Shown: positions 10,490 to 38,332 of the stretch, piece after piece
Layout: each line of letters begins with the position of its first letter
Numbering within the stretch: the stretch's first letter is position 1
Origin: Macrostomum lignano
Taxonomy: Eukaryota
Length of the DNA stretch: 64,000 nt
Reading direction: 5' to 3'
Assembly: GCA_002269645.1 (NCBI GenBank)
Contig: NIVC01002501.1
Span: 103,676-167,675 of the forward strand
The notes under the pieces: generated by a model
Told to the model about the DNA's origin: nothing
Databases searched by the model: none
The model's input: only the letters and a program-made list of their open reading frames with translations
Position numbers and translations under genes: made by a program

Positions 10490-10529
10490 CTGTAAGCGAG
10501 CGGGTGAGCTCTGCTCAGTATTTCACATT

Positions 10530-16980: not shown

Positions 16981-17460
16981 CCAGAGGCGCCAGCACCAGA
17001 GGCGCCAGCACCAGAGGCGCCAGCACCAGAGGCGCCAGCACCAGAGGCGCCAGCACCAGAGGCGCCAGCACCAGAGGCGCCAGCACCAGAGGCGCCAGCA
17101 CCAGAGGCGCCAGCACCAGAGGCGCCAGCACCAGAGGCGCCAGCACCAGAGGCGCCAGCACCAGAGGCGCCAGCACCAGAGGCGCCAGCACCAGAGGCGC
17201 CAGCACCAGAGGCGCCAGCACCAGAGGCGCCAGCACCAGAGGCGCCAGCACCAGAGGCGCCAGCACCAGAGGCGCCAGCACCAGAGGCGCCAGCACCAGA
17301 GGCGCCAGCACCAGAGGCGCCAGCACCAGAGGCGCCAGCACCAGAGGCGCCAGCACCAGAGGCGCCAGCACCAGAGGCGCCAGCACCAGAGGCGCCAGCA
17401 CCAGAGGCGCCAGCACCAGAGGCGCCAGCACCAGAGGCGCCAGCACCAGAGGCGCCAGCA
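16981..17460. repeat. 15-bp perfect minisatellite (CCAGAGGCGCCAGCA) x32
   Basis: 480 bp of identical units. Confidence 0.98.
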
Positions 17461-18507
17461 CCAGGCGAGAAAAACTGCCGTGAAGTGGCGTTTGAGTCAG
17501 CTGGCAAGGGAAATTGCCCCTGACTAACATCCTAAAATTTTCTTTAAAATATCTTCTGCCATATCCCTATTTAAAAATATAGTGGAAAGATTTGCTCAAA
17601 GAGTATAATAAAAAATGTTAAACATAATTTTGTTGCAGCTTGCACCAGGAAACAGTTCTGTAATCACAATTCTAAAAGTGGAACAGCCAACCGAAAATTC
17701 TTCCGAACCGATTCTATTTCTAGAACCGGAAATATAGGAAGAGCTATACAACAATGGTCTTATTAAAACAAAATTCTGATCTTTTTGTATTTCCGAACGG
17801 GATTTGAGCTACAATTCCAATATACGAGCGTAAAGTAGTCAAAATGTTTGTCGAAAAATGAAACGTTCCAATGAATCTGCAGCTTACATGCAGAAAGAAA
17901 CGAAGTTCTCCCGTCCTTCAACTTCAGGTCGTTCTTATGTGCATTTGCGCTTCCATTCTCCGGCCATGTTGACCAAGTTGGCTTCTATCAATCAAGTCTG
18001 AGATAACGAGATGTAGCTAATTAGCAAACAGCAAGTGAACAGAGAATGGCTCATGCCCTCCGCAGCAACCACTGGTGAGAGCACAATCAGCAGATTTGGA
18101 GCTGCCGTTCAACTTCAAGGACTTCACTCGAAACAAAAGCGGCCCACTAGCAGATGTCTCTTTTCCGAACTTCCCAAAATCCTTTCGACTCAAAGCAGAA
18201 ATCCACGGCATTCATTCTTCTATAGCAAATGTCTGCAATCCCAAGCCCTATGTAAATTACCAAACCTGGGGAGGTAAGTATCGGTTGCCATGGTACCGGG
18301 AGATTTTGAACAAATAAATCATGGCAAAAAAGGGAACGGAGCAGTTCTGCCCGCTTCTAAAATTTTTCCTCGCCTCGAGACTTGATTTCACTCCTTGCTA
18401 CAGTGTACCTGCATGGAAACCTGCATCAGTGAGTTAACATTGATTTTTAAAATCGTTTCTTGGTGCAAAAAGAAAAACGCAAGTCCTACATGCTATCATT
18501 TTTTCAG

Positions 18508-19505
18508 GCCATCTGCTGGTTGCGCTGCTTTGGTCCGCCCGGCTGACCGACTGCGAGAGTTTGTCAAGTGACTGGATGAGGTTGGGACTGCCGCAGTGCC
18601 TGCCCGAGGCCCAGGCCGTGAGGGTGGCCGAAACTCCATCCGGCATCTCCGACTGCGTCCTGCTCGCCATGGCTACAAAGGACTCGAGCGGCCAGCTGGT
18701 GGCCCAGTTCGACTCGGACACTCGCCAGTGCTCGCTCTTCCAATACACCGCAGTGTGCCACCTCATCGATGGACTCGCTGCTGCAGAGAGCTCGCAGTCC
18801 CGCCGCTGTGCCGCATTCGCCAATGACAGAGCCGCCAAGTTCCTCACCTTGAGCAGAAACCTGGGCGCCAAGCTGAAAGCCGTCTGGGTGATGAGCGACG
18901 ATGCGGACGCCAGCAGGAGCAACTTGGTGTGCGGCCAGACGCAGCAGTGGATGTCGGAGAATGTGGAGTGGAGCAGCGAGGGAGCCAAGCTCGACGGAGT
19001 GTCGTCCAAGATGTGGCTGGAGAACGTGGAGCTCGCGAACCTGCAGCAGGGACTCACGTGGCTGCTCAGGCTCAAGCGGGATGCCAAGATCGCTCCGCTG
19101 TTGCAGACTTACAACTGCGACTCCAAGTCTCTGGGAGCCGCTCTCTGGGACGGCTCACCGACAGCTTGGGGCTTGTACTTTTTCAGGGTGGCTCCATCGT
19201 ATTCAGTGTTCAAAACAACTCTGGAAACAAACTTTTTTGAACGGAACAAATTCGCCGAAGTTGCCGTAACTTCGGCATCTCCCTTTGACGTCGAATTCTT
19301 TTCCAAGGTTGGGCGTGTGTCAAAACCGAATGTAGTGCAGATGGAATACTATACTTTTGCTGCGGTCCCAAAAATCAACTGCATTGGTTTGGGGTTTCGA
19401 CCTGGAAGGTCTCAAATGTTGAAGGGCACGGTGCAGGCGGTGGCCATCATGAACGACACGATGACGGAGGCTGAGATCAGCAGCTTCTTCGAATTGGTGC
19501 GCTGA
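18508..19505 (+). CDS. secreted PAN/apple-like + LamG/ConA-like protein, copy 1 (main exon; 5' exon not confidently placed)
   Basis: Phase-1 acceptor TTTTCAG|GC, hydrophobic HLLVALLWSA signal segment, DC...AQFDSDTRQCSL, and LamG-like motifs KAVWVMSDD, AKLDG..., LTWLLRLK and KGTVQAVAIMNDTMTEAEI. Confidence 0.8.
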
Positions 19506-19797
19506 CGCCCCGGCGGTCCAGAAAATGATTTTTCTGACAAGTAACAAAAAGTTCTCTGCTTTTTTGTGATGGCCGGTTTTTATTTTCTGAAAAATATAAT
19601 TAAAGCAATCAAACATGCATTTAAGCGTCTTCAATCATTTTTCTTTTTATTTCGACGTAGTGCTGAGAGACTGAAAAGTTGGATCTGCAGCGTCTAAAAG
19701 TTTGTCACTCTTACTGCTAAATGGATGATAAGCAAGTTCTAACAAACGGAAACTTCACATCGTAAAGGACACAAATAAAAACAGTCAATCAAGCGAC

Positions 19798-20160
19798 GGA
19801 GGCAAGGGGTGTGTGCACCCTGGCACACTTTAAGTGACATTGTCACACAACCCGTGAGAGGCATTGTTGCCCATTCCGCTGACTCCCCTGAGCAGGCAAC
19901 ACAAGCGCGCGGATACGTACACAGGCATACGCAAAGGCACACACAGGATTGTACAGCAGCCCTAACTTTATCTACAGTTAGGCATGTACAATATACACTT
20001 CACTGTTCCTTGAAGTTGGCCCTCAAATGCGTTAATTGCAAGTGCAGATCCAAGCCTAGATTCCAATTTAGCTCCAAAATTAATGTGACTGCAGTTGGAA
20101 TCGAGCATGGGCCGCTGGCACATCAGAGCGCCGCGGTAATCCACTGGGCTGCGGCCCTCA
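19798..20160 (-). mobile_element. tRNA-derived SINE, family A, copy 2
   Basis: The reverse complement aligns along the whole length with 1707-2060, including head, B box GCTCGATTCC and the block GCCTGCTCAGGGGAGTCAGCGGAATGGGCA. Confidence 0.85.
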
Positions 20161-20716
20161 ATAACATCAGCCAATACAAAAATAAAAGTATTCTTAAGCG
20201 CTACAGTGCATGCATTTCACAGAGTCACCTGCAAGGGACTGGGTGTAGCAATAAAATTCGGACCAGCTAGAGCCGCAACAGCGTACGAGAAAAGCAAATT
20301 ATTTTTATCACAGATCAGCTCCCTAACTTTCCCTAGCTACGTTCCCCGTATTGCCGCACGTGCCTTGACTACCTGAGACTCCTCTTTAAATCCACACTGA
20401 TGATGAGTTGACATCTCGATCGAGCACTACAAAGCCTAACCCGCGAACATCACAGTTCCATGTTTCAAAAACTAGAAGCAGTTGCAGCCTGTGTCACTTT
20501 TTCTGTCTTTTGGTGGCTTCTGTACCTCCGGTAGGCCACCCAGTGTCCGAATTTAACTGGCTTCCTAAATCGCCTGCCAATCAGAAGTCAGCGTCTCACA
20601 GGAAAATTCCGCTATCAGATGCCGTGTAACTGAGGAATCGAGAGGACTTATAACGGCAAAGAGAAGCGCGAAAATTTTCGTTCAAACTACAGAATATTTC
20701 TGCATTCCAAGACATC

Positions 20717-21837
20717 ATGGCACTTTTTCTGACCTGTGCGCCAGCTTATGTGGGTGAGTTTCCGTGGGTTTTCTCGAATTCCGAACTGCAAACTCAATCG
20801 CTCCGGACATTCTTTTTAAATATCTACCAGGTCACCTTCTGGTTGCGCTGCTTTGGTCCGCCCAGCTGACCGACTGCGAGAGTTTGTCAAGTGACTGGAT
20901 CAGGCTTGGACTGCCGCAGTGCCTGCCCGACGCTCAGGCGGTAATAGTGGCCAAAACTCCATCCGGCATTGGCTGCATCATGATCGCTATGGCTACAAAG
21001 GACTCGAGCGGCCTGCAGGTGGCCCAGTTCGACTCGGACACTCGCCAGTGCTCGCTCTTCCAATACACCGCAGTGTGCCACCTCATCGATGGACTCGCTG
21101 CTGCAGAGAGCTCGAAGTCCCGCCGCTGTGCCGCATTCGCCAACGACAGAGCCGCCAAGTTCCTCACCTTGAGCAGGAAGCTCATGCTGGGTGTGGGCTC
21201 GAAGCTGAGGGCCGCCTGGGTGATGAGCGACGATGTGGACGCCAGCAGGAGCAACTTGGTGTGCGGCCAGACGGAGCAGTGGATGTCGGAGAATGTGGAG
21301 TGGAGCAGCGAGGGAGCCAAGCTCGACGGAGTGTCGTCCAAGATGTGGCTGGAGAACGTGGAGTTCGCGAGCGTGCAGCAGGGACTCACGTGGCTGGTCA
21401 GGCTCAAGCGGACTGTCCGAGTGGAGGCAACGCTGCTCGAATCCTACAACTGCGACTTCATGGCTCTTTGTGCGGGTTTTTGGGACGGCTGGACTGGCAG
21501 ATGGGGCCTGTACTTCTTCAGGGTGGCTTTATCTTACTTTGAGTACTTCACACCTTCTGCAACGAACTCGTTTGACCCGAATGAATTCGTTGAGGTCGGC
21601 GTTACTTCGGCGTCTCCGACAAGCCGCGACTTCTTCTCCAACTCCGGGTTCGTGCCGCGGTCTGCTGTCAACACTGGTTCTCAGCGTAACTCTGCCGTGT
21701 CGACATGCCGCTGCATCCGCTTGGGATTTCGACCTGGCGACCTGCGAATGCTGAAGGGCACGGTGCAGGTGGTGGCCATCATGAACGACACGATGACGGA
21801 GGCTGAGATCAACAGCTTCTTTTTTCTGGTGCGCTGA
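20717..21837 (+). CDS. secreted PAN/apple-like + LamG/ConA-like protein, copy 2 (exon 1 20717-20753, exon 2 20831-21837)
   Basis: Exon 1 MALFLTCAPAYV-G|GTGAGT and a phase-1 acceptor CTACCAG|GT give the signal peptide ...GHLLVALLWSAQLTDC. Paralog of copies 1, 3 and 4. Confidence 0.82.
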
Positions 21838-23650
21838 CCAGTCGACTGATAAATACATTTACAGTAGCTTAAAACGTTTGAGTGATTGCGGAACAAAACA
21901 TTTTGCTGGGTTTTCACTGATAACGAGAGGTTTTTGTTCCCGAGATTGTCTGAAATATCGCAGTAAAGTTTGATGCTGTTTTATGAAATAAAACGAATTA
22001 GAATAAGAACAATAGTCAAAGCAGGTATTTAATATTTCACTGCAATATTATACGTTTTTTATCAATGCCATGCTTGAGTTTGGAATGTTGAAACATTTGA
22101 AACACACTGAAACAAGAGAACTGCCACCAGAGAAAGTCGAAAGTAAGCTGTCTCAAACTCTAAAAGCAAAACCATATCACATCTACCAGAGACGGTGTTT
22201 AAAACGCGCTTGTCAATTATTTCAATAACTGTCCAGTAACGCAGACATTGCTTGCTTTATATGCCTATTGGACGACCAAAAGGCAGTGTCACGTGCACGG
22301 CATTGTAGACACCACACTTGGATTGGACATTTCAATGGAGGGATTCATTTCAATGAAAGACATTTATTACATGAAAAGGTTCCTGCAACTCTTCCTTGAC
22401 ACAGCTGCAGGGGCTCCGGGCATTCAGATACAGCGGGGAGGCGTCGACGCCCATTTCGCTGACCCCTGGCGACCACGGGCAGCTGGTACTGCGGTGTCGC
22501 ACAGGGAGATCCGGTGGTGCCGGTGTCCGCAGCGCGGTCCCCCTCCGAAGAGGCCAAGAGGAGGATTGTCCCTCGCCCGTGGTAGCCCTTAGGTAGCGGA
22601 CGAGCTGGCACAGATTCTCGGGCCTGAAAACGTCGGAGAGGTGAGCTTGTCCTGAGTAAAAGCGAGGAATTCACCCACGCAGTTGTCCGCATTCTCAACT
22701 CCGGAAAAGCAGAATGAGTATTCATCACTGCAGATTTTCCCAGGAGGTGGCGATGCCTAGCAAAACAGCTATCCCTGATGTCCCTGTGGTTGAGTTCAAG
22801 CAGTGCCATGTGGAAGGCGAGAGAAGGACATGGGACAGCCGCAGGGGATTTCTGGAAGTCGGGGGCGTTAATAGTTCTGTCCAAAAATGCCACCTTTGAA
22901 TCCGAGTGCTCTTATAACTCTACTTATAGTAGCATAGATAAAATAATTCCAAGACGAAAAAGTTCCTTAAAAATGAAAGCGTATCTAACTGGTACGAAGT
23001 ACGAGTTATTTGAAGTTTCTAGGAACATCCAGTATAAAGTATTGTCTCAGTCTGGAGCATGTGCATGATTTTAATGAGTCTAAGGAAAAACTATTTTAGC
23101 ATTGGGCCATATCGCAAGTATTGTATTAAAGCATGCTGCACAGCAAGTTCGTTAGTTTTGCGTATCTCAGAAAATTTCAGCGCTCGCAAAAACTTCTCCG
23201 TAGCAAACAAAGTCAGATTTTGCTGACTGAAAGCAAAGCCGAATTTCCACAGGTCTTAAACTGACTTGCTGCAACAGCGAAACTTGCGACGCCATGAATA
23301 GTGGCAAAGTGTGGCTTTTCAGCTAATGTGTCTTCGGCTTCAAAGCCCAATTTCGCAACTTGTAGCTAAATGGTATGAAGTCGGCGGTATAAGCTGAGCG
23401 AGAAAGCGTTTGAGCGAAACTGGCCAAGTTAGCGATTTATACCTAAGGTACATTTGAGCTGCTAGAAGTGAATGCTCCGACGTGTCAACGACGCGCATGA
23501 ATTATCGATCGCGTGCAACCCCAGATGTACATTTAGAAAAGAATAAAGCTCACTAATTTAAAGCCAACTAACAACGTTATTGCTTCGTCCAGCTGATCAA
23601 CGGTATTCACGGTATTTTCAAACCACTTGTACAGGCCGTGACTCTTACTG

Positions 23651-23790
23651 TGCCAGCAGGAGCAAATTGGTGTGTGGCCAGTGGATGTCGGAGAATGTGG
23701 AGTGGAGCAGCGAGAGAGCCAAGCTCGACGGAATCTCGTCCAAGATGTGGCTGGAGAACGTGGAGTTCGAGAAGTCGAAGCATGCAGGAA
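23651..23790 (+). pseudogene. fragment of the PAN-LamG family (invariant core block 2)
   Basis: GCCAGCAGGAGCAA...GAGAACGTGGAGTTCG is near-identical to the intact copies with a 9-bp deletion. The flanks are unrelated. Confidence 0.85.
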
Positions 23791-24239
23791 CTCAAAGAAT
23801 TATTCACTCGAGCTCTTTGCACTAAGTTGTTTTAAAAACAGGTCAACAGGTGCATGTTTCTAGCAGGCTCGACTCACCTTTAAGCTGAGACTTGTACCTC
23901 TTTTTGTAGAGTCTCATCCTTCTCGAAGTTGTGAATGTCTCGGCCATGTTCGCGTTTGATCCTAACGAGTCCTAACGAGCAATGAACGATTCACCTTTCA
24001 CCTTGTCCGCGAGTGTTACGAAGAAACCATAACAATACCTTTAGCATCCAATGAGTTCATGCTCTGGGTTAGTTCGTTAAAGAAGCTGTTCGTAAAATCC
24101 ACCCGTCGCTCCTACTAAAAATTACGATATGCAAGTCCCAAACAAAAGCGGAGAGCACAATGGCTAGTAACATGACTTTTCTGGCCACTAAAATGCATTA
24201 AACTAATAAGAGCAGGGCGGTCAACCTACGGAATAACGT

Positions 24240-24352
24240 GGTCCAACTTGGTGTTCGACCAGACGCAGCAATGGATATCAGTGTCATCCAAGACGTGGTG
24301 GGAAAATGTTGAGTAAATAATGCTTCAGTGACTCACGTGGCTGGTGAGGCTC
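24240..24352 (+). pseudogene. degenerate fragment of the PAN-LamG family
   Basis: CAACTTGGTG..CCAGACGCAGCAATGGAT..GTCATCCAAGACGTGG..GACTCACGTGGCTGGTGAGGCTC, with an internal deletion and stops. Confidence 0.75.
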
Positions 24353-24504
24353 GAACTATTATTGTGTGGAGCGACTGTCAACTTCATCAAACAGGTGTAG
24401 ATTTCTGGGAGCATTGGCTCATCATTTTGGCAGAACTCTACCGAAATGCCGTTATTTGACTCTAGCAAGCTGTTTTTCGCAGACTTTGCAGCATCGTTTT
24501 TTGT

Positions 24505-24828
24505 CAAGGCCTAGTGGTCTTGCGCAGCGCTCTGAAGTGCCAGCGGCCCAGGCTCGATGCTATTTCAGTCAAATTAATTTGGGACTAAATTGGAATCTTG
24601 GCATGGGCCTGCTTGTGCAATTAATGCCATTGAGAGTCAACGTCCTAGGCTCAATTAAGTGTATCAGATCCATCCTTTGTAAGTGTGTGCCTGTGCGTAC
24701 GACTGCGCACGTATCCGCGCGCTTGTGTGCCTGCTCAGGAGAGTCGGCGGAATGGGCAGTAATGCCTGTCGGGACAATGTCGCTTAAAGTGCGCCAGGGT
24801 GCGCACAGCCTTCCTGCTTCGAATAAAA
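24505..24828 (+). mobile_element. tRNA-derived SINE, family A, copy 3 (more diverged)
   Basis: Aligns with copy 1 (GCCTGCTCAGGAGAGTCGGCGGAATGGGCAGTAATGCC...GCTTAAAGTGCGCCAGGGTGC) and ends in AATAAAAA. Confidence 0.85.
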
Positions 24829-25555
24829 ATTGCTCTTTTTTGCGACAAAAGCCCGCTGTTGCGATCGATCTGCTGACTCTATTGCGATATTCCACTCCAT
24901 CCTTTTGTGACTTCCACTCAATGATGCTTTCAGGAGCAGGCGGTGGAGCATAAATGTAATCAAATTTGCGTATTAACGACATTAAAGTCTTCTTTGCGAC
25001 TTTAGGGAATACAAGGGTAAGTAATGGGGTTCGTTCTGGTTTGAGGACGTTTTTAGGGAGAAATAAAAACCAGCCCCTAAAGTTCCAGTGTGAGCACAGC
25101 TCTCCAAGTTTTAGTTATTCGAATTCGAATATTTTTGATGAAGAGTAGCTGCGCTGACGATAGTGATTGCAGTTGTAGTTTGGTGTAGTTCGAACTACCC
25201 AGCTGGCTCACTGAGCTGAGGTTGCTCGATGTTGTCTTGAATGTATTAAAACAAACTCAAGCAAGTCCAAACTCACTCAAATGATCAAATTACCAAAAAG
25301 AAATTATATTTATGCAAAACAACAAAGGGCTATTAGCTGCAGGATTTTACATGTGAATTCGGAATTGGTATTGCATAGATACAGCGTCGGGATATACGCA
25401 AGCAGAGAAAACTCGGGCAATCCACAATCCACGCAAAGTACAAAGTTGAGTAATAATTTTTTACATGCACAACTTAGAAACATGAAAACAGCAGTGTTAA
25501 AGGGTTATTTTACTCAAGTTCACCGATTCTGCTGCTTGGCCGTCACGTGACTCGG

Positions 25556-26155
25556 TCACTCGCAGTAGAACCAGAACACGGCCGCCGAGGCCAGAAAGCT
25601 CGGCCTCTCCAGCGTGCAGGTGACGAAGTCGTCCAGCTCCGAGTCGCCCGCAGTTCTCGACGCCATCATGAGGTGCTGCTGCGCTCGCTGCGTCACCGTC
25701 ACCATGACAACGATCTTGTAGCGCGGGCAGCTGAAGTTGTTCTTCATCCGGCGCTTCACATCCTCGGTGACCATCTTGGCCAGCTTGGGCGTCGCCTTGG
25801 CGTCGTAGCGCGACTCGGCCAGGAAGAACTTCAGGCTGTTCTCGGCGATGCGGCGCACCTCGGCGGCCGGGTACCTGGCGGCGGGCTCCGGGCCCAGCCG
25901 GTAGCTGTTCTCCTGCCGGCGCACCGGCCGGTTCCGGCGGTGCCGGGCGCGCAGGTCGCCGATGCGCCGCTTCAGCATCATCAGCGTGGCGAGGCTCGGC
26001 TGCTTCGCAGGCGAAGGCGCCGCCGAGGACGCAGTAGCAGCGGCGGCGGCTGCAGGCGTAGAGGCCGCATCCTCCGGTGTCTTGTGAGAAGCCTTTGCTG
26101 CCGACTTGGCCGCGGACTGGTGCTGCTGCTGATGCTGCTTGGTGGCTGAGCTCAT
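25556..26155 (-). CDS. Tctex-1 domain dynein light chain (TCTEX1D/DYNLT-like), single exon, 199 aa
   Basis: ENSYRLGP...YDAKAT..DVKRRMK...PRYKIVVMVTV...MASR..DSELDDF...AVFWFYCE is the Tctex-1 fold signature. The exact paralog is not assignable. Confidence 0.9.
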   Translation of the reverse strand: MSSATKQHQQQHQSAAKSAAKASHKTPEDAASTPAAAAAATASSAAPSPAKQPSLATLMMLKRRIGDLRARHRRNRPVRRQENSYRLGPEPAARYPAAEVRRIAENSLKFFLAESRYDAKATPKLAKMVTEDVKRRMKNNFSCPRYKIVVMVTVTQRAQQHLMMASRTAGDSELDDFVTCTLERPSFLASAAVFWFYCE

Positions 26156-26469
26156 GGCGTGGTGCGATCCTGAGTTTCCGACTCGGCTGGCGAGGTGAGC
26201 AACCTGGCGCGGCAGGAAATTTCGGTCGGCTGCGGAATGCCGATCAAGTAAGCGGCAGGGGCAGGGGGGAGCTGTTGCTCGCAGGCCCGCCTCCCCCTCC
26301 CTCCGCGACCCCTCCGGTGAGAACTGAGTGAGCTGAGCTGCAGCTGCGGCTTGATTGGCGCCACCGCCGAGGAAACAAAAGCGAAAGAGAGAATATGCCA
26401 GGCCCAGGCCACCCCTGCCTATCTCAGCGGCTCTCCCTCTTCACCTGCCCGGTGTTCTCGCTTCGCCCA

Positions 26470-26483
26470 GTTGCCATAGAAAC
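26470..26483. promoter_or_regulatory. RFX X-box (GTTGCCATAGAAAC), about 315 bp upstream of the Tctex-1 gene
   Basis: Perfect match to the GTHNYYATRRNAAC consensus, upstream of a ciliary-type gene. Confidence 0.6.
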
Positions 26484-27019
26484 GGTCCCTCCCCCCTCAA
26501 TAGTCGTCGGATAAGAGAGCCGAGATCGAGACGAGTGAGGCAGATAGGGAGACGCGGGGGAGAGGGAGAGAATTCTGTTTCTGCTGCCGGACCCGCCGGG
26601 TTTCAGTAGGAATTCCCGACACTGCTGGGCGCTGAGCAAATAGCAGAAAGGAGCGGGGGAGAACGGCTGGTAGCTGAGAGACCCCAGTAGCTGGGAGGAA
26701 TGCCAGGGCGGGATCCGGCACACCCAGCTGCAGCGCGCCAGCAATTGCTTTTATTGCTGAATGCCAAGTGACGCTTTATCAAAGCCAAGGACACCTGGAG
26801 CGAGAGTCTGGACTGAGAGTCATACGATTCTAAATATGCGATCGAGCAGGTTTCCACAGAATATTGCAAACTAAAATTTATAAAGATTTTAGCCAGGCAT
26901 CAAAAAAGTATTATAAACCAGATTCTGAGATTTTTCAGCTTTACCACAAGCTCAAAAAGTATATTTGACAAAATTTTTTTGATAACTTGTTATCACTAAA
27001 CTGCAGTACGCCAGAACTT

Positions 27020-27850
27020 AGGGCTTTAGCACCAAGGGGCTTTAGCACCAAGGGGCTTTAGCACCAAGGGGCTTTAGCACCAAGGGGCTTTAGCACCAAG
27101 GGGCTTTAGCACCAAGGGGCTTTAGCACCAAGGGGCTTTAGCACCAAGGGGCTTTAGCACCAAGGGGCTTTAGCACCAAGGGGCTTTAGCACCAAGGGGC
27201 TTTAGCACCAAGGGGCTTTAGCACCAAGGGGCTTTAGCACCAAGGGGCTTTAGCACCAAGGGGCTTTAGCACCAAGGGGCTTTAGCACCAAGGGGCTTTA
27301 GCACCAAGGGGCTTTAGCACCAAGGGGCTTTAGCACCAAGGGGCTTTAGCACCAAGGGGCTTTAGCACCAAGGGGCTTTAGCACCAAGGGGCTTTAGCAC
27401 CAAGGGGCTTTAGCACCAAGGGGCTTTAGCACCAAGGGGCTTTAGCACCAAGGGGCTTTAGCACCAAGGGGCTTTAGCACCAAGGGGCTTTAGCACCAAG
27501 GGGCTTTAGCACCAAGGGGCTTTAGCACCAAGGGGCTTTAGCACCAAGGGGCTTTAGCACCAAGGGGCTTTAGCACCAAGGGGCTTTAGCACCAAGGGGC
27601 TTTAGCACCAAGGGGCTTTAGCACCAAGGGGCTTTAGCACCAAGGGGCTTTAGCACCAAGGGGCTTTAGCACCAAGGGGCTTTAGCACCAAGGGGCTTTA
27701 GCACCAAGGGGCTTTAGCACCAAGGGGCTTTAGCACCAAGGGGCTTTAGCACCAAGGGGCTTTAGCACCAAGGGGCTTTAGCACCAAGGGGCTTTAGCAC
27801 CAAGGGGCTTTAGCACCAAGGGCTTTAGCACCAAGGGGCTTTAGCACCAG
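27020..27850. repeat. 16-bp minisatellite (ACCAAGGGGCTTTAGC), about 52 copies
   Basis: Near-perfect array with one 15-bp unit near the right end. Confidence 0.98.
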
Positions 27851-28184
27851 AATTTGAGGGTTAGGGAATGCTTTGGCGCTACGGACTCCAGTTGTCGGCC
27901 TCCTTGATCAAAGAATAGTTTTTATGACTAGCAATCAGCCCTCATTTAAACTCTGCAGTTTTATTGCTGACTTGCAAACAATTTTTATTTCTCTGTGTTG
28001 CATCGCCTGCCCAGGAAAAGCCTTCCCAGGCCCAGCAATGAAACTCTTCCTGTGCTCAAAGAGTGCAGGTTGGGGAATCGGCTCCACTCTTGTCAGGGTT
28101 ATTGGCAGCCAGCTTAGCAATCGATAGATTTCAATCAAATGAGTTTAGAGCTCTGAATTTCTATTTTGGGCTTTCTGCAGACTC

Positions 28185-28427
28185 TTGGGAGAAGAAAGGC
28201 CCCCTGAAGAGATTTCTGTGGTGCTTACAGGTGTTAATTGCATTTCGATTTTCTCCATGGAGGATATTATTAGACATTTTAGGGTGAGTCAGAAGCTTCT
28301 TATGACTCGCTGTATGCGGCTGCATCCGCGAATGCTCAAGGACACAGTGCAAGCGGTGGCCATCATCAACGACGCGATGACGGAGGCTGAGATCAGCCGC
28401 TTCTTCAGCTTAATGCGGTCACCCTAA
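28185..28427 (+). pseudogene. diverged C-terminal fragment of the PAN-LamG family
   Basis: PRMLKDTVQAVAIINDAMTEAEISRFFSLMR matches the family C-terminus; the upstream part is highly diverged. Confidence 0.78.
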
Positions 28428-28454
28428 GATGTCGCCAGCTTCGCTAACTGAATC

Positions 28455-28815
28455 ATCAGTGTTGCGAGCTCGCACTTCAGTAGAATTATTGAAAAGTTCG
28501 GTAACTGGAGTTGTTTCAATTGATTACACCTGTCCCATTAGGGCCAGATGTGCACCGACAGCTCAGCCGCAGCTATTGCGCAGCGCATCTGAAAGCTGCG
28601 TACGGCTGTTCAGTCCAAGGACTGCTGGGGTCGCCACACCCTCAATTACCTCAGCTAATGCTGGCACCCATTTTACAGCTGGGTGAACTGAAGCAATGCA
28701 GAGAGAGATAAGTGTCTTGCTCACATGACACAAATTGTTCTAGTGGGATCGGGAATCGAACCCCCGACCTTCAAGTCGTGAGTCCGACGCTCTAACCACT
28801 AGGCTACAACCCCCT
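28455..28815 (-). mobile_element. CORE-SINE (tRNA head + CORE domain)
   Basis: Minus strand has a tRNA-like head GGTTGTAGCCTAGTGGTTAGAGCG...GGTTCGATTCCC, then TGTGTCATGTGAGCAAGACACTTATCTCTCT..GCTTCAGTTCACCCAGCTGTAAAATGGG, which resembles the CORE consensus. The 3' boundary is approximate. Confidence 0.78.
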
Positions 28816-29315
28816 ACTTTTGAATCAGCCCTCGTATATTATTCTTCATGTGCCGGGATTATCTTGTTTATTGCTATGATGTAGCAAGTTCGAGCTGCTA
28901 ATTTTTTTAAAACAAAAAATACTGTCATGTCGTTTTACGCTTTGCCTTGGCGACGCGACTCAACAAATGATGAAGTCGAGCACAGGCTGTTCTCAGCTCC
29001 TTGATTACGCTTCGGACACTGCCGCAGTCAAGGCGACACGAGTTGACCCGGTAGCATGGACGCTGGCAGCTAAGGACCCCTGAACATGCTCAAGCACACG
29101 GATGCGTCCCCTGTGCCTTTTGGGACTGGCCCTGATGAGAGGACCTCAGCTGTCTAAATTTAAATTGCAACATTACTTCTTTCAGTAACCAATAACTCAA
29201 AATTGACCCTAAAATTGCCTACAGTATCCAGCTGCCATTGCTCAGATGCCTGCCATCTGCATCGCTGTAACACATCTCGAAAGGAACATAAAATTAAAGG
29301 AACATAATTAGGGTG

Positions 29316-29341
29316 CACACACACACACACACACACACACA
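29316..29341. repeat. (CA)n microsatellite
   Basis: Direct reading of the sequence. Confidence 0.95.
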
Positions 29342-29997
29342 TGATTCCTGCAGAAGTAGCACCTTACTACTGCATGGTAGCATATGGTTTATTTCTAAAC
29401 AAGAACCAGCGCAAAAGCAAACTCAGTCGGGTGCTCAGTCGAGGGATTCAAATCACACGTTGACTGAAGCGAATTCGCGTGTTTGTGCCAAATAGCGCTA
29501 TTGCCCCTAAAAGCAGCGTGTTTACGAAAGCACACAGTCATGGCGCCCCAAGCAATCAGGCAGGATTTATTGGTGCAAATAGTAAGGCATCAAGCAATTT
29601 TGCAAGAAATCATTCCAGTCTCTGCTTTGTATTGACATTTAACTTTTAGTTGAACATCCAGAGCAATAAACCTGTGATGCCTGCTACCAACTTTGGTCTG
29701 ATGGAGTCAGTGCAAGTTGCCGCGATTTGAGCTTAGCTCCTCTGCCATCCAATCATTCCAGACTTTCACGGATGCGGCTGACTTCAAACAAATTTTATCG
29801 TCTATTTATCTAACAGCTCCAGATTGACTCACCCGGACTTCTCCCAGGACTAAAGCGCTTCAAAGCGACAGTGTTTTGACTGCAACAATAGAAAAGAGGG
29901 GCAGATACCATGCAGCTCAATTTCAGGAGTTTTTCAGCACTCTGAGCATCGGTAAGACTTACTAATTATTGCACTTCCTGAAGATAAAAACCTACCA

Positions 29998-31017
29998 ATG
30001 TCACTGTGTACTTCAGGTAGTTCGCTGCTTGTTCTGTTTCTCTGTATTCATCTGAGCTGCTGCGATATATCTGCTGAAATGTGGCATCGTCTGAGCAGCC
30101 CGCAGTGCCTGCCTGAGAATCCAGCAGTGCGGGCGACCCAGATTCAGAGAGGCATCATCGAGTGCCTCGATTACGGCGCCTCGAGCAAACTGCTGGTTGC
30201 CCAGTTCGACTCGGACACTCGCCAGTGCTCGCTCTTCCAATACACCGCAGTGTGCCACCTCATCGATGGACTCGCTGCTGCAGAGAGCTCGCAGTCCCGC
30301 CGCTGTGCCGCATTTGCCAATGCCAGAGCCGCCAAGTTCCTCACCTTGAGCAGGAAACTCATGCTGGGTGTGGGCTCGAAGCTGAGGGCCGCCTGGGTGA
30401 TGAGCGACGATGCGGACGCCAGCAGGAGCAACTTGGTGTGCGGCCAGACGCAGCAGTGGATGTCGGAGAATGTGGAGTGGAGCAGCGAGGGAGCCAAACT
30501 CGACGGAGTGTCGTCCAAGATGTGGCTGGAGAACGTGGAGCTCGCGAGCGTGCAGCAGGGACTCACGTGGCTGGTCAGGCTCAAGCGGGATGCCCGAGTG
30601 GAGGCAACGCTGCTCGAATCCTACAACTGCAACTCCACGGGGGATCGGGGCGCGGCGTTTTGGGACGGCTGGACTGGCGGATGGGGCCTGTACTTCTTCA
30701 GGGTGGCTTCATCTTACTTTGAGTACTTCACACCTTCTGCCACGAACTCGTTTGACCCGAATGGATTCGTTGAGGTCGGCGTCACCTCGGCGTCTCCGTC
30801 AGGCCGCGACTTCTTCTCCAACTCCGGGTTCGTGCCGCGGTCTGCTGTGAACACTGGTCCTCAGCGTAACTCTGCCGTGTCGACATGCCGCTGCATCCGC
30901 TTGGGATTTCGACCTGGCGACCCGCGAATGCTGAAGGGCACGGTGCAGGCGGTGGCCATCATGAACGACACGATGACGGAGGCTGAGATTCGCAGCTTCT
31001 TTGGTCTGGTCCTTTGA
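29998..31017 (+). CDS. secreted PAN/apple-like + LamG/ConA-like protein, copy 3
   Basis: 339-aa ORF with signal peptide SSLLVLFLCIHLSCC. The true start may lie in an upstream exon, because the phase-1 acceptor CTTCAG|GT at 30016/7 matches the other copies. Confidence 0.82.
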   Translation: MSLCTSGSSLLVLFLCIHLSCCDISAEMWHRLSSPQCLPENPAVRATQIQRGIIECLDYGASSKLLVAQFDSDTRQCSLFQYTAVCHLIDGLAAAESSQSRRCAAFANARAAKFLTLSRKLMLGVGSKLRAAWVMSDDADASRSNLVCGQTQQWMSENVEWSSEGAKLDGVSSKMWLENVELASVQQGLTWLVRLKRDARVEATLLESYNCNSTGDRGAAFWDGWTGGWGLYFFRVASSYFEYFTPSATNSFDPNGFVEVGVTSASPSGRDFFSNSGFVPRSAVNTGPQRNSAVSTCRCIRLGFRPGDPRMLKGTVQAVAIMNDTMTEAEIRSFFGLVL

Positions 31018-31049
31018 CTCAGCAAGCAGCTCGGTCCGTGCAATTCAAC

Positions 31050-31053
<4 letters not shown>

Positions 31054-31092
<39 letters not shown>

Positions 31093-31100
31093 AGAGAGAG

Positions 31101-31135
<35 letters not shown>
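31054..31135. repeat. compound microsatellite (CA)n(GA)n(TA)n(GA)n
   Basis: Direct reading of the sequence. Confidence 0.95.
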
Positions 31136-33254
31136 AACACCGATGCTTTGTTACGAAATGATTCTGTGTGATTAATCTTTAATTCAATATTTTGGCCTTA
31201 CGCGCATCGCAGACTATACTAACGTACTAAGTTACTTTCGTTGTTCTATGGCTGCATGTGAAGATTTATTAAAAGAGAACCCTTCTTTTGTGATGAATTC
31301 TCCTGCACTTGTAGTACTTATTCAGTCACTCCGACTTTGTCTATTGTATTGACATACCTGTGCTCATTGCTCAATTGCACTGTACTGACAGCATGGGGTT
31401 ACCCTCTCTTGCTCTTCTTTCTTTGAGACGCCTGTTGGTTAAGGCTTTAATTCTATTTGTGTATTTATTAATTTGTCTGTTTCTCAGCTCCCCTTTTAAT
31501 GCATGCTGCAGTCACTGGTTGTGTTGGCGTCACCTTTTCTAACCCGGCCGTCTCGCGCGCGATTGGCTGTCCCAGGGTTGAGGCGCGATCGACCCTTCTG
31601 TCCTTTTGTTATCTCGCTCGCTTTGATTGGCTGAACCGTTTTTTAGCTGCCTAAGTCCCAGTTTTCTACCCCCCTTTTCTGTCTCCCCTCCCCGTGTGTT
31701 CAAGTCTGCAAGCTCTATTTATTGAGAACTCCCCTATGGGCCGCTTATGCGATTGCGTTGCCCCTGTCTGTGATCCGGTCCGTCTGCGCTCTCAGCTCGA
31801 ATCTGTCAGAAATATACGACTCTCCCTATACGACCTAGTTTCATCGCTGCTGTACCACGTAAGACGTTTGTTGTTTCGTCTTTAGTTGGGTTTGACTGTT
31901 TTAGGGCCCAGCTGGGATTCGGAGCGTCGTACGCCCGTCTGATCTCAATTGGCACAGCATGGTATGCGTGCAGAGACATTCGGAACTACTCGAGTAGTTT
32001 GGCCCCAGCTGACTCTGCTGTGACGTGACCGCAGCATTGGGTGCGTACACGAGCCCGGACTAGCGGGAATTGTTTCTGGGGTTCCGCCTCCCCTCCCCAA
32101 ACACGAAAATTGAAATCGGATGCCTTTGCTTTGCGTAGGCTAATTTGCAGCTGTTGTATTTTTGAGAGATATCGGATTATCAATTCAATTTGACTGTGAC
32201 TGTTTAGAAGGCCAAGCTAATCAGGATTGATCAATCGGTAACGACACGTCAGGATTTTGTTTATCAGCTTCATTTTTTGCATACATGCGCAGAACTCTTT
32301 AGAAGTGTCTAACCTGGTAAGGAAGTATGAAGTGAATGGTGACTTCAGATGTAAACACCTTTAACTACTACTAAGAGTAAAGATTGTTGCAAAGCTTTCT
32401 AGAGGCCGTTGAGTTGCGTGCTTTGAGTAGTGAGCTCGATCAGTTATTTCTCCAGCTCGTGAGTTTAACAAAGTCAGCACGCCAGGGTAACACAACAGGC
32501 ATCATCTCGGAACCGGCAAAAACGCCTGCAGGCTGATTCTGGCTTGAGTGATTGAAGAAGCTGCATGGCTGGATCAGCCATGATGCCTATTCAAATAATT
32601 TAGAAACATTTGCAGATAAAAATGGGTAAACAAAAACTGACGCTTAATGCTTCATGGATGATGAATAGGATAAAACACCATCAGATGCGCTTGGATCGCT
32701 ATGTGGTCTTCATTACTTGTTTTAGAAACTTTGCACCGGAGAAGTAGCTCGTAGCTGGGAAATTAGTTACAGAATCGCTTGCTCAAAATTGTTTGTTTTA
32801 AAAAGTAGAAATTGACTCCAAAATCCAGTGAGCACCGCCACTAATGCATTGGATCGACACTTGATCCCATAAACAGGGGTGGACGCGACATTTGGTATCA
32901 GCGGTGACTGGGGTGTCTGCAATGCAGTTTCGATCGCACCAGTTCCAATCAAGCCACACTGAAAGCTCCAGAAAGCATCCGCTACCCCTGAACAGCCAAT
33001 CAAATTGCAGCATGATGAAGAGGAATTTCCAGCGTCCTAGAATGCTCAGATAAATTCAGCACGCTAAGTCATAAGCCGAAGTCACATCGACTCAGCTGAG
33101 TTATTCCTGAATAAAGCGACCGGACAGCTGCAGCCATGTCGCCTCGAATCTCGGAGCGAAGACTATTCGGTAAGATCTTGTCAAATGGAAACACTTCATC
33201 GTAGGAGGCTTGCAGCCAAACCAGTTCTGTGTTGTTCCTTTTCATGACTTTCAG

Positions 33255-34255
33255 GTCCGATTCTGCTGTTTTCACTTCTAAGCCTGGCCCAGCTGGTCCA
33301 TTCCCGAAGCCCGCCGGGCCTCTGGCACCGTCTGAGTAGCCCGCAGTGCCTGCCTGAGAATCTGGCAGTGCGGGCGACCAAGATTCAGAGAGGCATCATC
33401 GAGTGCCTCGATTACGGCGCCTCGAGCAAACTGCTGGTGGCCCAGTTCGACTCGGACACTCGCCAGTGCTCGCTCTTCCAATACACCGCAGTGTGCCACC
33501 TCATCGATGGACTCGCTGCTGCAGAGAGCTCGCAGTCCCGCCGCTGTGCCGCATTCGCCAATGCCAGAGCCGCCAAGTTCCTCACCTTGAGCAGGAAGCT
33601 CATGCTGGGTGTGGGCTCGAAGCTGAGGGCCGCCTGGGTGATGAGCGACGATGCGGACGCCAGCAGGAGCAACTTGGTGTGCGGCCAGACGCAGCAGTGG
33701 ATGTCGGAGAATGTGGAGTGGAGCAGCGAGGGAGCCAAGCTCGACGGAGTGTCGTCCAAGATGTGGCTGGAGAACGTGGAGTTCGCGAGCGTGCAGCAGG
33801 GACTCACGTGGCTGGTCAGGCTCAAGCGGACTGTCCGAGTGGAGGCAACGCTGCTCGAATCCTTTAGCTGCGACTTCATGGCTCTTTGTGCGGGTTTTTG
33901 GGACGGCTGGACTGGCGGATGGGGCCTGTACTTCTTCAGGGTGGCTTCATATTACTTTGAGTACTTCACACCTTCTGCCACGAACTCGTTTGACCCGAAT
34001 GAATTCGTAGAGGTCGGCGTTACTTCGGCGTCTCCGTCGAGCCGCGACTTCTTCTCCGACTCCACGTTCGTGCCGCGGTCTGCTGTGAGCGCTGGTCCTC
34101 AGCGTAACTCTGCCGAGCCGACATGCCGCTGCATCCGCTTGGGATTTCGACCTGCCGACCCGCGAATGCTGAAGGGCACGGTGCAGGCGGTGGTCATCAT
34201 GAACGACACGATGACGGAAGCTGAGCTCCGCAGCTTCTTCGGCCTTCTGCGCTGA
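33255..34255 (+). CDS. secreted PAN/apple-like + LamG/ConA-like protein, copy 4 (main exon)
   Basis: Phase-1 acceptor TTTCAG|GT, then PILLFSLLSLAQLVHSRSPPGLWHRLSSPQCLPENL, open to the stop at 34255. Confidence 0.82.
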
Positions 34256-35981
34256 CTCTGAGACTACAATTAACAAGAAAGCGCCATTTTTCTGCTGTTT
34301 TGAGGCTTTGGTCATTCGTGTTAAATGCTAATTTTGAGAATAGGAGCGTGCAAACATCAACTAACTTCAACTCTTTGTCCTCTATTCTCTAAAACCAAGA
34401 AAATAACACCGTTTTATTGTATCAGAGCACATCAAACTTGACATTTAGGAATTCTTACATAAAGTTTTTGTTTTTGCCCATGAGAATTCGTTTACCATAA
34501 AATATATATTTGCCTGCATACATAGACTGCAATACCTGGTGGCTGCGTTAATGATTAGCTAATGAATATTCTGGCCTATCTGTTGTTGACTTCATCTGCA
34601 TCTGCATAAGCATGTTGAAAATTGCGTGTACAATATTTTTTAATACTGGAATTAATTGAGTCAGTGCTCGGGCATTCTCACCTCGCAACTACAGCAGCGA
34701 TACGTGAATTATTTTTTCTGGCCATGGAAATTGCCGCAGCCAACCTAGCTAGCTCATGCCTGTGAAGGGTTGGGGAAGTAGGATTGGCAAATTTTTTTAT
34801 CTGTTTACTCAACCGAATGCAATTAACCTTTGTGTCAATTAGTCACCTAAATGGTTCAATAAATTGCATAGTTATTTTTAATTCCAGGAGAAAGTTTGAC
34901 TTAACCTCGCTCCGGACCACTTGACTCAGCAAGTTAATTGATAAGTGACCTGCGAAATTTGCTAATATTAGGGATTTGCGGGAATGTTCGATCGTACCAG
35001 ATGCTTGCACCGTACAAAAATTGTTCTTTTCCATCCATGTCTTTGATTGATTTCAGAAAAAACGGCTCAATCGATTTTTTAAATACTTGCACCGTTCGAT
35101 CAGCAGAAATATCCCGTGACCGTGACGTACACTGTACATGTACATACATAATACTCCTATGTACTCGTACATGTATATGTCGTTGCTAAGAAATTTGTCA
35201 ATGCTATAAGGATTAAGCATCCTATATACTAAATATTTTATTCTAAAATCCCACAACAAGAACGTTAACAAAATTACAATACAAGAGCGAAAACATTTAC
35301 GGTACAATTACATAACTTGTGGCGTGGAGGTCATCATTAACTTCGACAGCTTCGGTCGCATTAGTTTCATTTATTATTTTAAATTCAGTCATTTGAAAAT
35401 TGTATTATATAATCTACATGTACATGAATTACGCGTGGCATGAAACTGACCCAAATTGAATTTTTATACGATCGGATCATTGTAAAAGTAAATTTATGCT
35501 GGTTAAAAGCTTGTTTCGACTGTAAATTAGATGGTCTCTTTCTGCATTAAATGCGCTAATTGTACTGTAAATGTATGCAAACATGAGTATGATGACCTTA
35601 CGGTTATATTAAAAACTCCTTTCCGCATTTATATGTATTGTCCCTCCATAAATTTCTTTTTTATGCAAAGCCAAAACGGTATCCCCTTGCGAATTTCTTT
35701 CTCTTTGATCCTTCATAAAATAATTAAAGTACTGCGGTATTATGAGCGTAATGCTCCCCGGCCTGCGGCCATAAATTAAAAGTCACTTATACATGTACAA
35801 TAGTGACGAGCTAAAAATCGTATTTATCATGTAAAAGTACCCTATATAGCCCTATATAGCTCCTTTTCGAATTATTATTAAATGATCCCTAATTGGGACT
35901 TCATAATCCCGATGGCCAATCACCTGATCGGGATCCCTAACATTGACTTTTTTGGCCAAATAGGCTATTCGCCTGAGCCCA

Positions 35982-36271
<290 letters not shown>

Positions 36272-37464
36272 ACTATGGCAACGCGGGTTTAAAGACATTG
36301 GGCAGGGAATTGCTCAAGGTTGCAGAAATACATTTATTTTTCGTTTAATGCACGGCTTGTCGAGTAAAACAAAATCAATTACAGCGGTAATGCAACCATC
36401 ATACTTTATCAAAATACTAATTATGAAATAATAATTAGTTAAAAAATATAACTTTCTGCACAAAGCTTTTGAAAAGTAAGAATGCGCCATGGAAACTCGG
36501 TTAATTTATTGCATGAATTGTATTTTGAATTTTCGTGAAAAATTAGTAAACAAGTTTGAAGTTAACTATAAAAATCAATCTTTTCTTTTAATTGCCCATA
36601 ATAGACCTCAACTAAAGTAAAAAAATCCGAATCGAACTATAATTTTCTACAAAAAGTGGGGTGCTGATTTGGATGACTTTATTTATTTATGCTACTTTGT
36701 CTTTCGTGAGAATCGGTTTGGTTGTAAAAGCATTCTGGGTACTGGGTTAAATCATGTAACACTGTTGCATTTTTTGCTCGATTTTTAGTTTGCGAAAAGA
36801 TTTAACTTCCAGGTGTTGAGAGCTATTTGAAAAACCATCATGATAAGCTAAAAAGAATATCAACTGATGTGGCTTAAGAAATAAACGATTTTGCCTTTAT
36901 TTTGGGTTCGGTTTTTTAATACTTTTAGATATTTATTTATTTAAAAATTTCATATAGATAGGATAGAAATACACAGATCTGGGTAATATATTATTGAAAA
37001 TTATTTTATTGTTGCTTAAGAATAAGTGAACAAATATTTTCTAAAGTTAATCTATTAAAAGAATTTACTCTTGTTCAAAGCAAACAGTAGAAATGCCTTG
37101 GCAACATAATATTGTTATGAAATTGTTTGGATTGATTTATGTGTTTTATGTCATTCATTGTTTGTAAAAGAATGTTTCTATTAGATAGTAAAGAGACTCC
37201 AGATTCTATAAGTGTGCCAATTTTACAAATGACATGATGGTTTGATAAAAAAACTTAGTTCTAGATATTCCTTTTAAGAAAAAATAAAACGATTTATTCT
37301 TAACTTTTTTCACCTACTCTACCACAGTTTTTAGGGTGGCTGCAATATTTTTATGTACCAGAAAGTTGTTGCACCTGAAAAAATGTCTTTAGTAAACTCC
37401 CATTTCCCCAAAAATAACCACTTCCCCAAATAAAATCTTCAGTGCAGCTGACTTAGCAGCGCAA

Positions 37465-37842
37465 ATGTCAGGCAGCAGCGGCTACAAATGCAGCCTGGAG
37501 CTCAACCTGGAGCTCGTGTCCTCGCCGGGCACCCAGCTGCCCAACCGCGACCTGCTCTACGTGGTTGTGGAGGCCTTCAGCCAGGCCAAGCGGACCCGCC
37601 TGCTCGATGCCGTCTTCCCTCTCTGCGTGCACGAGCGCTTCCGCTTCGAGCGCTGCTTCTGGACTGCGCGCGACTCGCGCGAGGTCGCCGACCTGCTGGC
37701 CGACTCCGTGGTGACGGTGGAACTGCGCCAGGTCACGGATGTCTACCTGGGCGGCTGCCTGCTCGCGTACCTCAAAACCGACGCCTGCAACTTCTTCCAG
37801 CCGCCGACTGCCGGTGGCAGCTTCAAGTCCGGCGATAGGACG
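37465..37842 (+). CDS. SPATA6: SPATA6-family protein, exon 1
   Basis: CSLELNLELVSSPG..LYVVV..F.Q.KRT....VFPL...FRFERCF..A.D..EV..LL....V..EL.Q resembles the SPATA6 N-terminal domain. Donor ACG|GTGAGA, phase 0. Confidence 0.8.
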
Positions 37843-37889
37843 GTGAGAGCTGGCGCTGTGCGGGGATTTGAATTTTAATGGGGCTCTGG

Positions 37890-38258: not shown

Positions 38259-38332
38259 TGTTTCATTGTGTTGAATTTTATAAATTTATTCAGACTTAAA
38301 GCTCAAAACTCCACCTGAACTCGAACCCCCAG

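Follow-up and report, generated by a model that had tools for sequence, protein, structure and literature searches.

Four neighbouring copies of a gene family (c1–c4) lie in a 64,000-nucleotide (nt) stretch of the Macrostomum lignano genome (the window; assembly GCA_002269645.1, contig NIVC01002501.1, positions 103,676–167,675 of the forward strand). Their large coding exons are mosaics, in which segments that group the four copies in mutually conflicting ways are separated by two short blocks that are almost invariant. We consider it probable (about 0.75) that this is a lineage-restricted family whose coding exon has been overwritten piecewise by repeated gene conversion between paralogs. The family is old; its flanks, its introns and the coding segments that diverge most are either saturated or unalignable. 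The product, of ~340 residues, is modelled as a leader followed by an N-terminal domain of ~100 residues with six cysteines and, at the C terminus, a concanavalin A (ConA)-like jelly roll of the LamG type of ~210 residues, and is probably secreted. Concerted evolution combined with mosaic conversion in a clustered secreted family is a known kind of mechanism.

Constant blocks and conflicting segments

In a codon alignment of the four copies, block 1 (L-VAQFDSDTRQC...RRCAAFAN) varies at 7 of 135 nt and block 2 (VMSDD...MWLENVE) at 3 of 144 nt. Identity over both blocks is 95.6–100% and synonymous divergence (dS) is 0–0.10 for all pairs. Third codon positions share in this invariance: 3 of 45 vary in block 1 and 1 of 48 in block 2 (4 of 93 combined), compared with 106 of 214 in the N-terminal, middle and C-terminal segments (Fisher P = 1.5e-16).

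The N-terminal part separates c1 and c2 (type A) from c3 and c4 (type B), with about half of the sites differing between the two pairs (dS 0.85–1.0; nonsynonymous divergence, dN, 0.62–0.78). Within the pairs, c1 and c2 are 88.5% identical here (dS 0.24) and c3 and c4 74% (dS 0.43). The linker between the blocks is private in c1 (8 differences in 60 nt plus a 12-nt indel), and c2, c3 and c4 are 0–1 site apart. The middle segment joins c2 and c4, which differ at only 3 of 129 sites (dS 0.03); the counts for c2–c3 and c3–c4 are 15 and 18 of 129, and eight two-by-two sites are common to c3 and c1. In the C-terminal part c1 (type alpha) is 65–67% identical to the other copies (dS 0.79–0.91), which are 91–94% identical among themselves (type beta; dS 0.09–0.14).

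The groupings conflict from segment to segment: c1,c2/c3,c4 in the N-terminal part, c1,c3/c2,c4 in the middle and c1 versus the rest in the C-terminal part. Support for the first comes from 47 informative sites, 43 of which fall within alignment columns 138–297, and for the second from nine, eight of them within columns 649–764. The observed clustering of site patterns was reached in 0 of 10,000 shuffles in a PHI-like permutation test. One of the copies, c2, is a chimera: the ratio of sites at which it is nearer c1 than c3 is 75:6 in the N-terminal part and 14:123 in the C-terminal part (Fisher P = 2.7e-36). It also turns from c4-like in the middle segment (15:3) to c3-like in the C-terminal part (8:18; P = 8e-4). 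Runs of matching polymorphic sites are significant in a GENECONV-like permutation test for c1–c2, c2–c3, c2–c4 and c3–c4 (P = 2e-4 to 1.4e-3), and the long consistent tracts span 25–31 polymorphic sites.

An earlier note, made by inspection of this DNA, had anticipated much of this pattern. Its two nucleotide blocks, nearly invariant down to third positions, are borne out by the counts above, and the five sorted features that it listed all recur in the protein alignment: the N-terminal module with NDR/NAR (c1 and c2 versus c3 and c4); the linker NLGAKLKAV versus KLMLGVGSKLRAA (c1 versus the rest); EL..KRDA versus EF..KRTV (c1 and c3 versus c2 and c4); three forms of the loop past the Cys, of which CNSTGDRGAAF is private to c3; and the C-terminal NSGFVPRSAVNTG of c2 and c3 versus DSTFVPRSAVSAG of c4. 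Its argument that no single tree fits all segments agrees with the clustered, incompatible site patterns, and the signals by which it proposed to recognize exchange, conversion tracts and segment-dependent dS, are both found. Switches in grouping coincide with the edges of the invariant blocks, as expected from its suggestion that exchange is anchored there.

Probable gene conversion and its alternatives

Similarity between the copies is confined to the coding exon. In self-BLAST comparisons, c1–c2 similarity begins 3 nt before the splice acceptor, and pairwise similarity ends 1–3 nt past the stop codon or, in the weakest pairs (c1–c3 and c1–c4), shortly before it. For no pair is there flank similarity at E <= 0.01 in the 600 nt upstream of the acceptor and the 600 nt downstream of the stop, and the best match (20 nt, E = 0.043) is at chance level. 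Coding dS just inside the boundaries is only 0.09–0.24, a divergence at which the flanks of a plain duplicate or crossover product should be 80–90% identical. Because the flanks are unrelated despite this low dS, the copies are old and their coding similarity is secondary, which favours recurrent gene conversion inside an old family as the source of the mosaics. The earlier note had left the choice between gene conversion and unequal crossover open; conversion is favoured over recent crossover, since no pair has flanking similarity and conversion tracts cannot enter unrelated DNA.

Recent unequal crossover, in which misaligned tandem copies recombined inside the blocks to produce fusion genes such as c2, is an unlikely origin. 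Haemoglobin Lepore is a fusion gene of this kind. The copies do lie head to tail, in pairs spaced by 2.3 and 3.3 kb, the main c2 switch is located in or beside the blocks, and relics between the pairs point to copy-number turnover. A crossover product keeps the parental flanks, however, and c2 is unlike c1 upstream and unlike c3 and c4 downstream, despite coding dS of 0.24 and ~0.1 just inside the boundaries. Crossover would also require at least four tracts that differ in age and extent, and block 2 is common to a copy on another contig.

That copy (L001) occupies positions 9666–10648 of M. lignano contig NIVC01000195.1. It is ~75–78% identical to the window copies overall, and matches c4 with zero mismatches from GTGATGAGC to GAGAACGTGGAG, ~147 nt of block 2. 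Its downstream flank likewise has no similarity to theirs beyond chance-level matches. L001 reads in three frames, with two shifts inside or near block 1, and its annotation covers the last 215 codons only; it is either a pseudogene or a carrier of assembly indels.

The same layout is found, more pronounced, in a second taxon, represented by six environmental contigs that we examined as DNA (L002–L007), all short-read assemblies with 35–39% protein identity to c3. Here blocks of 100% identity alternate with segments of 40–60% identity. L007 and L002 are identical in the leader, in block 1 and over two parts of block 2, and L003, L004 and L005 agree at every position of a 69-nt part of block 2. 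Within that block, the contigs fall into two types by a 42-nt cassette, in conflict with adjacent sites. As in M. lignano, the 3' flanks of the copies are unrelated. Several contigs start exactly at a block and finish in minisatellites, as is usual where a short-read genomic assembly meets repeats. An additional DNA scan of the metagenome for the block recovered one further contig, L007. The 3' ends of L003–L006 consist of copy-specific minisatellites, and in L002 (~1020–1132) the last ~43 nt of the coding sequence are tandemly repeated past the stop. A putative second gene on L004, considered as a divergence calibrator, was rejected as a minisatellite.

The blocks are almost invariant within M. 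lignano and within the second taxon. Between the taxa, 57 block codons comprise 8 with fixed synonymous differences, 12 with fixed amino-acid differences and 37 that are identical. Agreement within each taxon, together with fixed synonymous differences between them, indicates that the blocks have probably been homogenised by concerted evolution. The version of c4 in a gene model of the M. lignano ML2 assembly (P0002) has three in-frame residue differences from the window c4, each corresponding to the state in other paralogs. GC content at third positions (GC3) is 0.90–0.92 in block 2 versus 0.58–0.72 in the C-terminal part, where it is lowest in c1. The high GC3 of block 2 fits GC-biased conversion, and codon bias could contribute to it.

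It is quite improbable that the blocks are instead functional as nucleotide sequence, whether as part of an overlapping gene (antisense or in an alternative frame), as an RNA structure or as a target of small RNAs or regulation, and owe nothing to homogenisation. Two conserved islands do flank the variable c1 linker, the second taxon retains the 37 identical codons, and antisense and alternative-frame open reading frames (ORFs) of 137–217 residues cross the blocks in all four copies. The ORFs are not retained in the second taxon, however; open alternative frames are explained by high GC3, of which they are probably by-products. The paralogs of each taxon agree at the eight codons with fixed synonymous differences, the block RNA folds less stably than shuffled sequences (z = +1.99), no Rfam family matches the blocks, and the incompatible groupings outside them would be left unexplained.

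An artefact in which multi-mapping short or RNA-seq reads imposed one paralog's sequence on the blocks, and perhaps on some joints, is very improbable. In its favour, the genome is rich in repeats and duplications; the Mlig_3_7 assembly was built from noisy PacBio reads, polished by Pilon with Illumina and RNA-seq reads and contains 180 Mb of duplicated blocks (PMC5730564); similarity is limited to the exon; block length is about that of one read; and the second-taxon contigs, assembled from short reads, break at the blocks. Polishing, however, may sharpen 97% to 100% only for small differences where reads already map, and cannot create either the contrast between 97–100% and 50–67% identity or tracts of 25–31 polymorphic sites. 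The same blocks also occur in gene models of the separate ML2 assembly, on another contig and in environmental sequence of four JGI data sets and one ENA record.

Under recurrent conversion, the history of the four copies would begin with an ancient pair, A-alpha (c1-like) and B-beta (c3/c4-like), with dS of ~0.85–1.0 in both halves. Each member would have been duplicated locally (N-terminal dS 0.24 for c1/c2 and 0.43 for c3/c4), after which a beta-type donor would have converted the 3' two-thirds of c2 (dS ~0.09–0.10). A later tract would link c2 and c4 in the middle segment (dS 0.03), and both central blocks would have been repeatedly homogenised across all copies, including that on another contig. 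We infer this direction and order of events. Heteroduplex forms only where similarity persists, so each tract would start and stop either inside a constant block or at an end of the coding exon, and similarity would continue to break off abruptly at the acceptor and at the stop codon. As the sole long near-identical stretches, the blocks would act as exchange anchors, and the outcome would be proteins that have a constant core and differing combinations of variable modules.

Several observations weigh against this account. The divergent c1 linker lies between the two blocks, which calls for a pair of tracts, for patchy repair or for selection acting on the linker. With 37 of 57 block codons identical between the taxa, some constraint at the nucleotide level may also act. 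All of the evidence comes from assembled sequence; polishing can erase small differences between near-identical paralogous exons, and the identity of the blocks (dS of 0) may be overstated. Variable residues are not enriched in the loops of the predicted protein model (Fisher P = 0.55–0.58), to which the earlier note had proposed to map them. Finally, dN/dS is 0.4–0.9 in the variable segments and exceeds 1 in no segment of the four copies, so diversifying selection is not demonstrated. Such values suggest that module combinations may be kept for binding different partners; they are compatible either with a relaxation of constraint or with diversifying selection beyond the reach of these data.

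A stronger proposal is that the blocks are the working part of a diversity-generating system, serving as fixed anchors for frequent reshuffling of modules in the germ line or even somatically. We regard this as improbable. Were it true, individual repertoires would differ, for immunity, self/non-self recognition or sexual conflict in this hermaphrodite, and the block-and-cassette layout of the second taxon would reflect selection for the architecture.

Concerted evolution with conversion limited to the coding region is familiar from Drosophila amylase and from primate globin and opsin genes. The window family resembles these in its homogenised coding sequence, unrelated flanks, sharp boundaries, patchwork of tracts and raised GC3 in converted parts. 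It differs in that homogenisation is strongest in two short internal blocks, with the neighbouring segments kept as types, and in that the layout recurs in a second taxon. By analogy of architecture, the nearest counterpart is the SpTransformer (Sp185/333) family of sea urchins, described as small, tightly clustered genes with a short leader exon and one large mosaic exon, with repeats in the flanks and with recombination invoked as the diversifier (PMC3342357, PMC5491942, PMC8634487). The likeness extends to architecture only, and there is no relation in sequence or fold. SpTransformer mosaics involve the presence or absence of elements, together with internal repeats, in disordered proteins, whereas the window family has alternative versions at the same positions of a folded domain; SpTransformer genes number ~50 copies, and four are seen here.

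Predicted fold of the product

The AlphaFold2 model of c3, calculated with a 24-sequence alignment, has a predicted local distance difference test score (pLDDT) of 79 and a predicted template modelling score of 0.77. With five close paralogs only, the pLDDT was 31; it rose to 79 when 24 relatives were aligned. Means over 10-residue blocks are 72–95 for residues 121–339, and a sandwich of strands extends from about residue 128 to the end. A Foldseek search of the PDB with this model returned 161 matches at E <= 0.001, and the matches listed are ConA-like lectin domains. The best of them (probability 1.0, E 1.7e-7 to 3e-6) have template modelling scores of 0.37–0.48, normalised to the whole 339-residue query. 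These best matches are to the lectin-like domains of trypanosomal trans-sialidases and to Hc-N domains from clostridial neurotoxins; a lectin module of a pilus is also matched at probability 1.0. A family profile compared with the PDB gave marginal matches (E ~0.01) to the lectin modules of bacterial sialidases. The model thus supports a ConA-like fold for the C-terminal ~210 residues at the fold or superfamily level only. The resemblance to trans-sialidase and neurotoxin domains is likewise one of fold, at 9–17% sequence identity and without a catalytic or toxin partner domain, and says nothing on toxicity or sialic-acid binding.

Laminin_G_3 (PF13385), a member of the ConA-like superfamily, has the same order of motifs (W-x-x-x-D, L/FDG, LTWLxRLKR and G-T-V-x-x-V-x-I-x-x-x-x-M-T-x-x-E-I) and a jelly-roll sandwich like that predicted here. 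Scores against it are 19.9 bits for c3, 16.9 for c2 and 16.1 for c4, with no match for c1, all below the gathering threshold of 27.6 bits. Weak matches occur in 9 of 24 family members at E <= 0.1, the best at E = 1.2e-5. Of the LamG assignment made earlier, the jelly-roll fold is supported by the model and the structural matches, and membership of Laminin_G_3 is not, given the sub-threshold scores of the window copies. The family also differs from Laminin_G_3 in that its jelly roll is fused to an N-terminal domain with six cysteines, for which no relatives were detected.

That N-terminal domain, with pLDDT values of 52–83 over its ~100 residues and six conserved cysteines, resembles PAN/apple domains in length, cysteine number, a predicted sheet and helix, and a C...aF.y...C.L-like stretch (VAQFDSDTRQCSLFQY). 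It differs from them in sequence: the N-domains of 11 family members have no match to PAN_1, PAN_3 or PAN_4 in Pfam, and a profile of the 11 has no match in the PDB, PAN included, in either case even at E <= 10. The earlier description of this domain as PAN-like therefore finds no support from sequence comparison.

On the model, block 1 forms the second half of the N-terminal domain and block 2 the strands with which the jelly roll begins. Variation is greatest at residues 209–220 of c3, a patch predicted to be a hairpin. No conserved sugar or calcium site was identified. Hydrophobic stretches lie within the first ~25 residues of the products (mean Kyte-Doolittle 2.1–3.0 over 10 residues), where c1, c2 and c4 start from a predicted exon, and the N terminus is helical at low confidence in the AlphaFold2 model. 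These hydrophobic N termini, supplied in part by predicted first exons, suggest that the protein is probably secreted.

Locus, family distribution and significance

The four copies correspond to long plus-strand ORFs at 18.4–34.3 kb of the window (Table 1), and a translated search of the window recovered these four and three fragments, and no more. The interval 18508–34255 assigned to the cluster earlier runs precisely from the first base past the c1 AG acceptor to the c4 stop codon. Its description as a tandem cluster holds for four neighbouring copies; they do not form one array. The copies are arranged as two head-to-tail pairs, c1–c2 and c3–c4, separated by ~8 kb that contain an unrelated minus-strand Tctex-1 gene, a minisatellite and the three decayed family fragments.

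A phase-1 AG acceptor is present at one codon position in all four copies and in L001, and the first exon base after it is 18508, 20831, 30017 and 33255 in c1–c4, respectively. In c1, c2 and c4 the ORF is continuous upstream of the acceptor and has no in-frame ATG, so a short upstream exon is needed. Spliced to the candidate exons in Table 1, the products have 337–347 residues and hydrophobic N termini. The four copies were previously called intact; the count stands, and intactness extends no further than the large exon in c1, c2 and c4, for which the first exons are candidates. The M. lignano spliced leader has an ATG at its end (PMC8629364). This ATG was rejected as the start codon because at the conserved phase-1 acceptor it is out of frame and reads into a stop, and we propose that the start codon of c1, c2 and c4 comes from a short cis-spliced first exon instead.

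Table 1. Positions of family members and other features in the window
Feature	Position	Strand	Remarks
Long ORFs c1; c2; c3; c4	18444-19505; 20758-21837; 29998-31017; 33248-34255	+	
c1 large exon, acceptor to stop	18508..19505	+	N-terminal type A, C-terminal type alpha (outlier)
c2 large exon	20831..21837	+	Chimera: N-terminal type A (c1-like), C-terminal type beta (c3/c4-like)
c3 complete ORF	29998..31017	+	Own ATG, hydrophobic leader; N-terminal type B, C-terminal type beta
c4 large exon	33255..34255	+	N-terminal type B, C-terminal type beta; middle segment almost identical to that of c2
Block 1 (135 nt) in c1; c2; c3; c4	18693..18827; 21013-21147; 30190-30324; 33431-33565	+	
Block 2 (144 nt) in c1; c2; c3; c4	18888..19031; 21220-21363; 30397-30540; 33638-33781	+	
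Candidate exon 1 of c1 (METCI...)	18413..18428	+	Predicted; GTGAGT donor, 79-nt intron; spliced start METCISHLLVALLWSARL..., hydrophobic leader
Candidate exon 1 of c2 (MALFLTCAPAYV)	20717..20753	+	Predicted; GTGAGT donor, 77-nt intron
Candidate exon 1 of c4 (MSPRISERRLF)	33136..33169	+	Predicted; GTAAGA donor, 85-nt intron
Decayed fragment, block 2 region only	23640..23792	+	~88% nucleotide identity, internal deletion
Weak family fragment	24242..24355	+	51% amino-acid identity to block 2 and middle region
Decayed fragment of C-terminal end (…LKDTVQAVAIINDAMTEAEISRFF…)	28308..28418	+	
Antisense ORFs across blocks	18434-19087; 20934-21407; 30171-30584; 33412-33879	-	137-217 residues, together with plus-strand alternative frames
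Tctex-1 family dynein light-chain-like gene	25556-26155	-	Intact, single exon, 199 residues; Pfam E = 1.5e-17; unrelated to the family
SPATA6-domain gene exons	35057-39115	+	Just downstream of c4; 76-100% identity to P0002, 96-100% over best pieces
59-nt unit x37	6185-8323		
15-nt unit x32	16981-17464		100% identity
16-nt unit x52 minisatellite	27021-27849		99% identity; between gene pairs
(ACT)x98	35982-36275		
33-nt unit x13.7	44530-44981		100% identity
Inverted repeat pair	19807-20149 and 24509-24810		71.5% identity; between c1 and c2, and after the relics
Rfam tRNA match	28744-28813	-	34.3 bits, above gathering score, E = 6e-4; no ARAGORN call; adjoins C-terminal relic

The window is rich in minisatellites, with 50 rows in the Tandem Repeats Finder output, of which some overlap in describing a single array, and several satellite arrays produce long artificial ORFs. 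A compound (CA)n(GA)n(TA)n microsatellite begins ~35 nt past the c3 stop (window ~31050–31120). Each copy of the inverted repeat contains an ORF with the common motif CAPW.TLSDIV...AHSADSPEQA, and the repeat may be a mobile element. The tRNA match may be a degenerate or tRNA-derived element.

The family is lineage-restricted. An exhaustive HMMER profile search recovered 30 relatives among 1.84 billion representative proteins, which are either M. lignano models, several of them fused to neighbouring genes, or proteins of short environmental contigs. By a word-indexed protein search only one relative was recovered, an M. lignano hypothetical protein (P0001; 69% identity) from contig NIVC01000195.1 of the same assembly. 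Exact-protein look-ups of c3 and of the Tctex-1 protein found no entry on record. In the literature we found no description of the family and nothing relevant tying Macrostomum to gene conversion, concanavalin A-like or Laminin_G_3, and searches for the gene identifier Mlig033890 in full texts and in the supplements of three M. lignano papers gave no result.

The ML2 model of c4 (P0002, UniRef A0A1I8F1U2) begins with the c4 N terminus, its first codon being the one that follows the acceptor, and then runs on into exons of SPATA6. From its match, the window is identified as this M. lignano locus or as an allele or homeologue of it. This entry is a chimera of two genes, a frame-shifted c4 and the SPATA6 gene downstream of it. 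A distant M. lignano member of 339 residues (P0017) contains two tandem repeats of the N-terminal domain and the first half of the jelly roll, and represents either a real internal duplication or an annotation fusion of two truncated neighbours.

Short-read assemblies break at the blocks, and fused or frame-shifted gene models are a further hazard, of which database entries give examples; annotation and expression counts for these genes need care. Through its predicted fold, the family adds a lineage-specific use of the ConA-like fold. Interest in it would rise sharply if module shuffling were frequent or programmed. M. lignano is a laboratory model with transgenesis, RNA interference and in situ methods, in which a module-exchanging family could be studied directly. 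Such work could reveal how conversion acts together with selection to assemble repertoires of binding proteins beyond the classical immune families.

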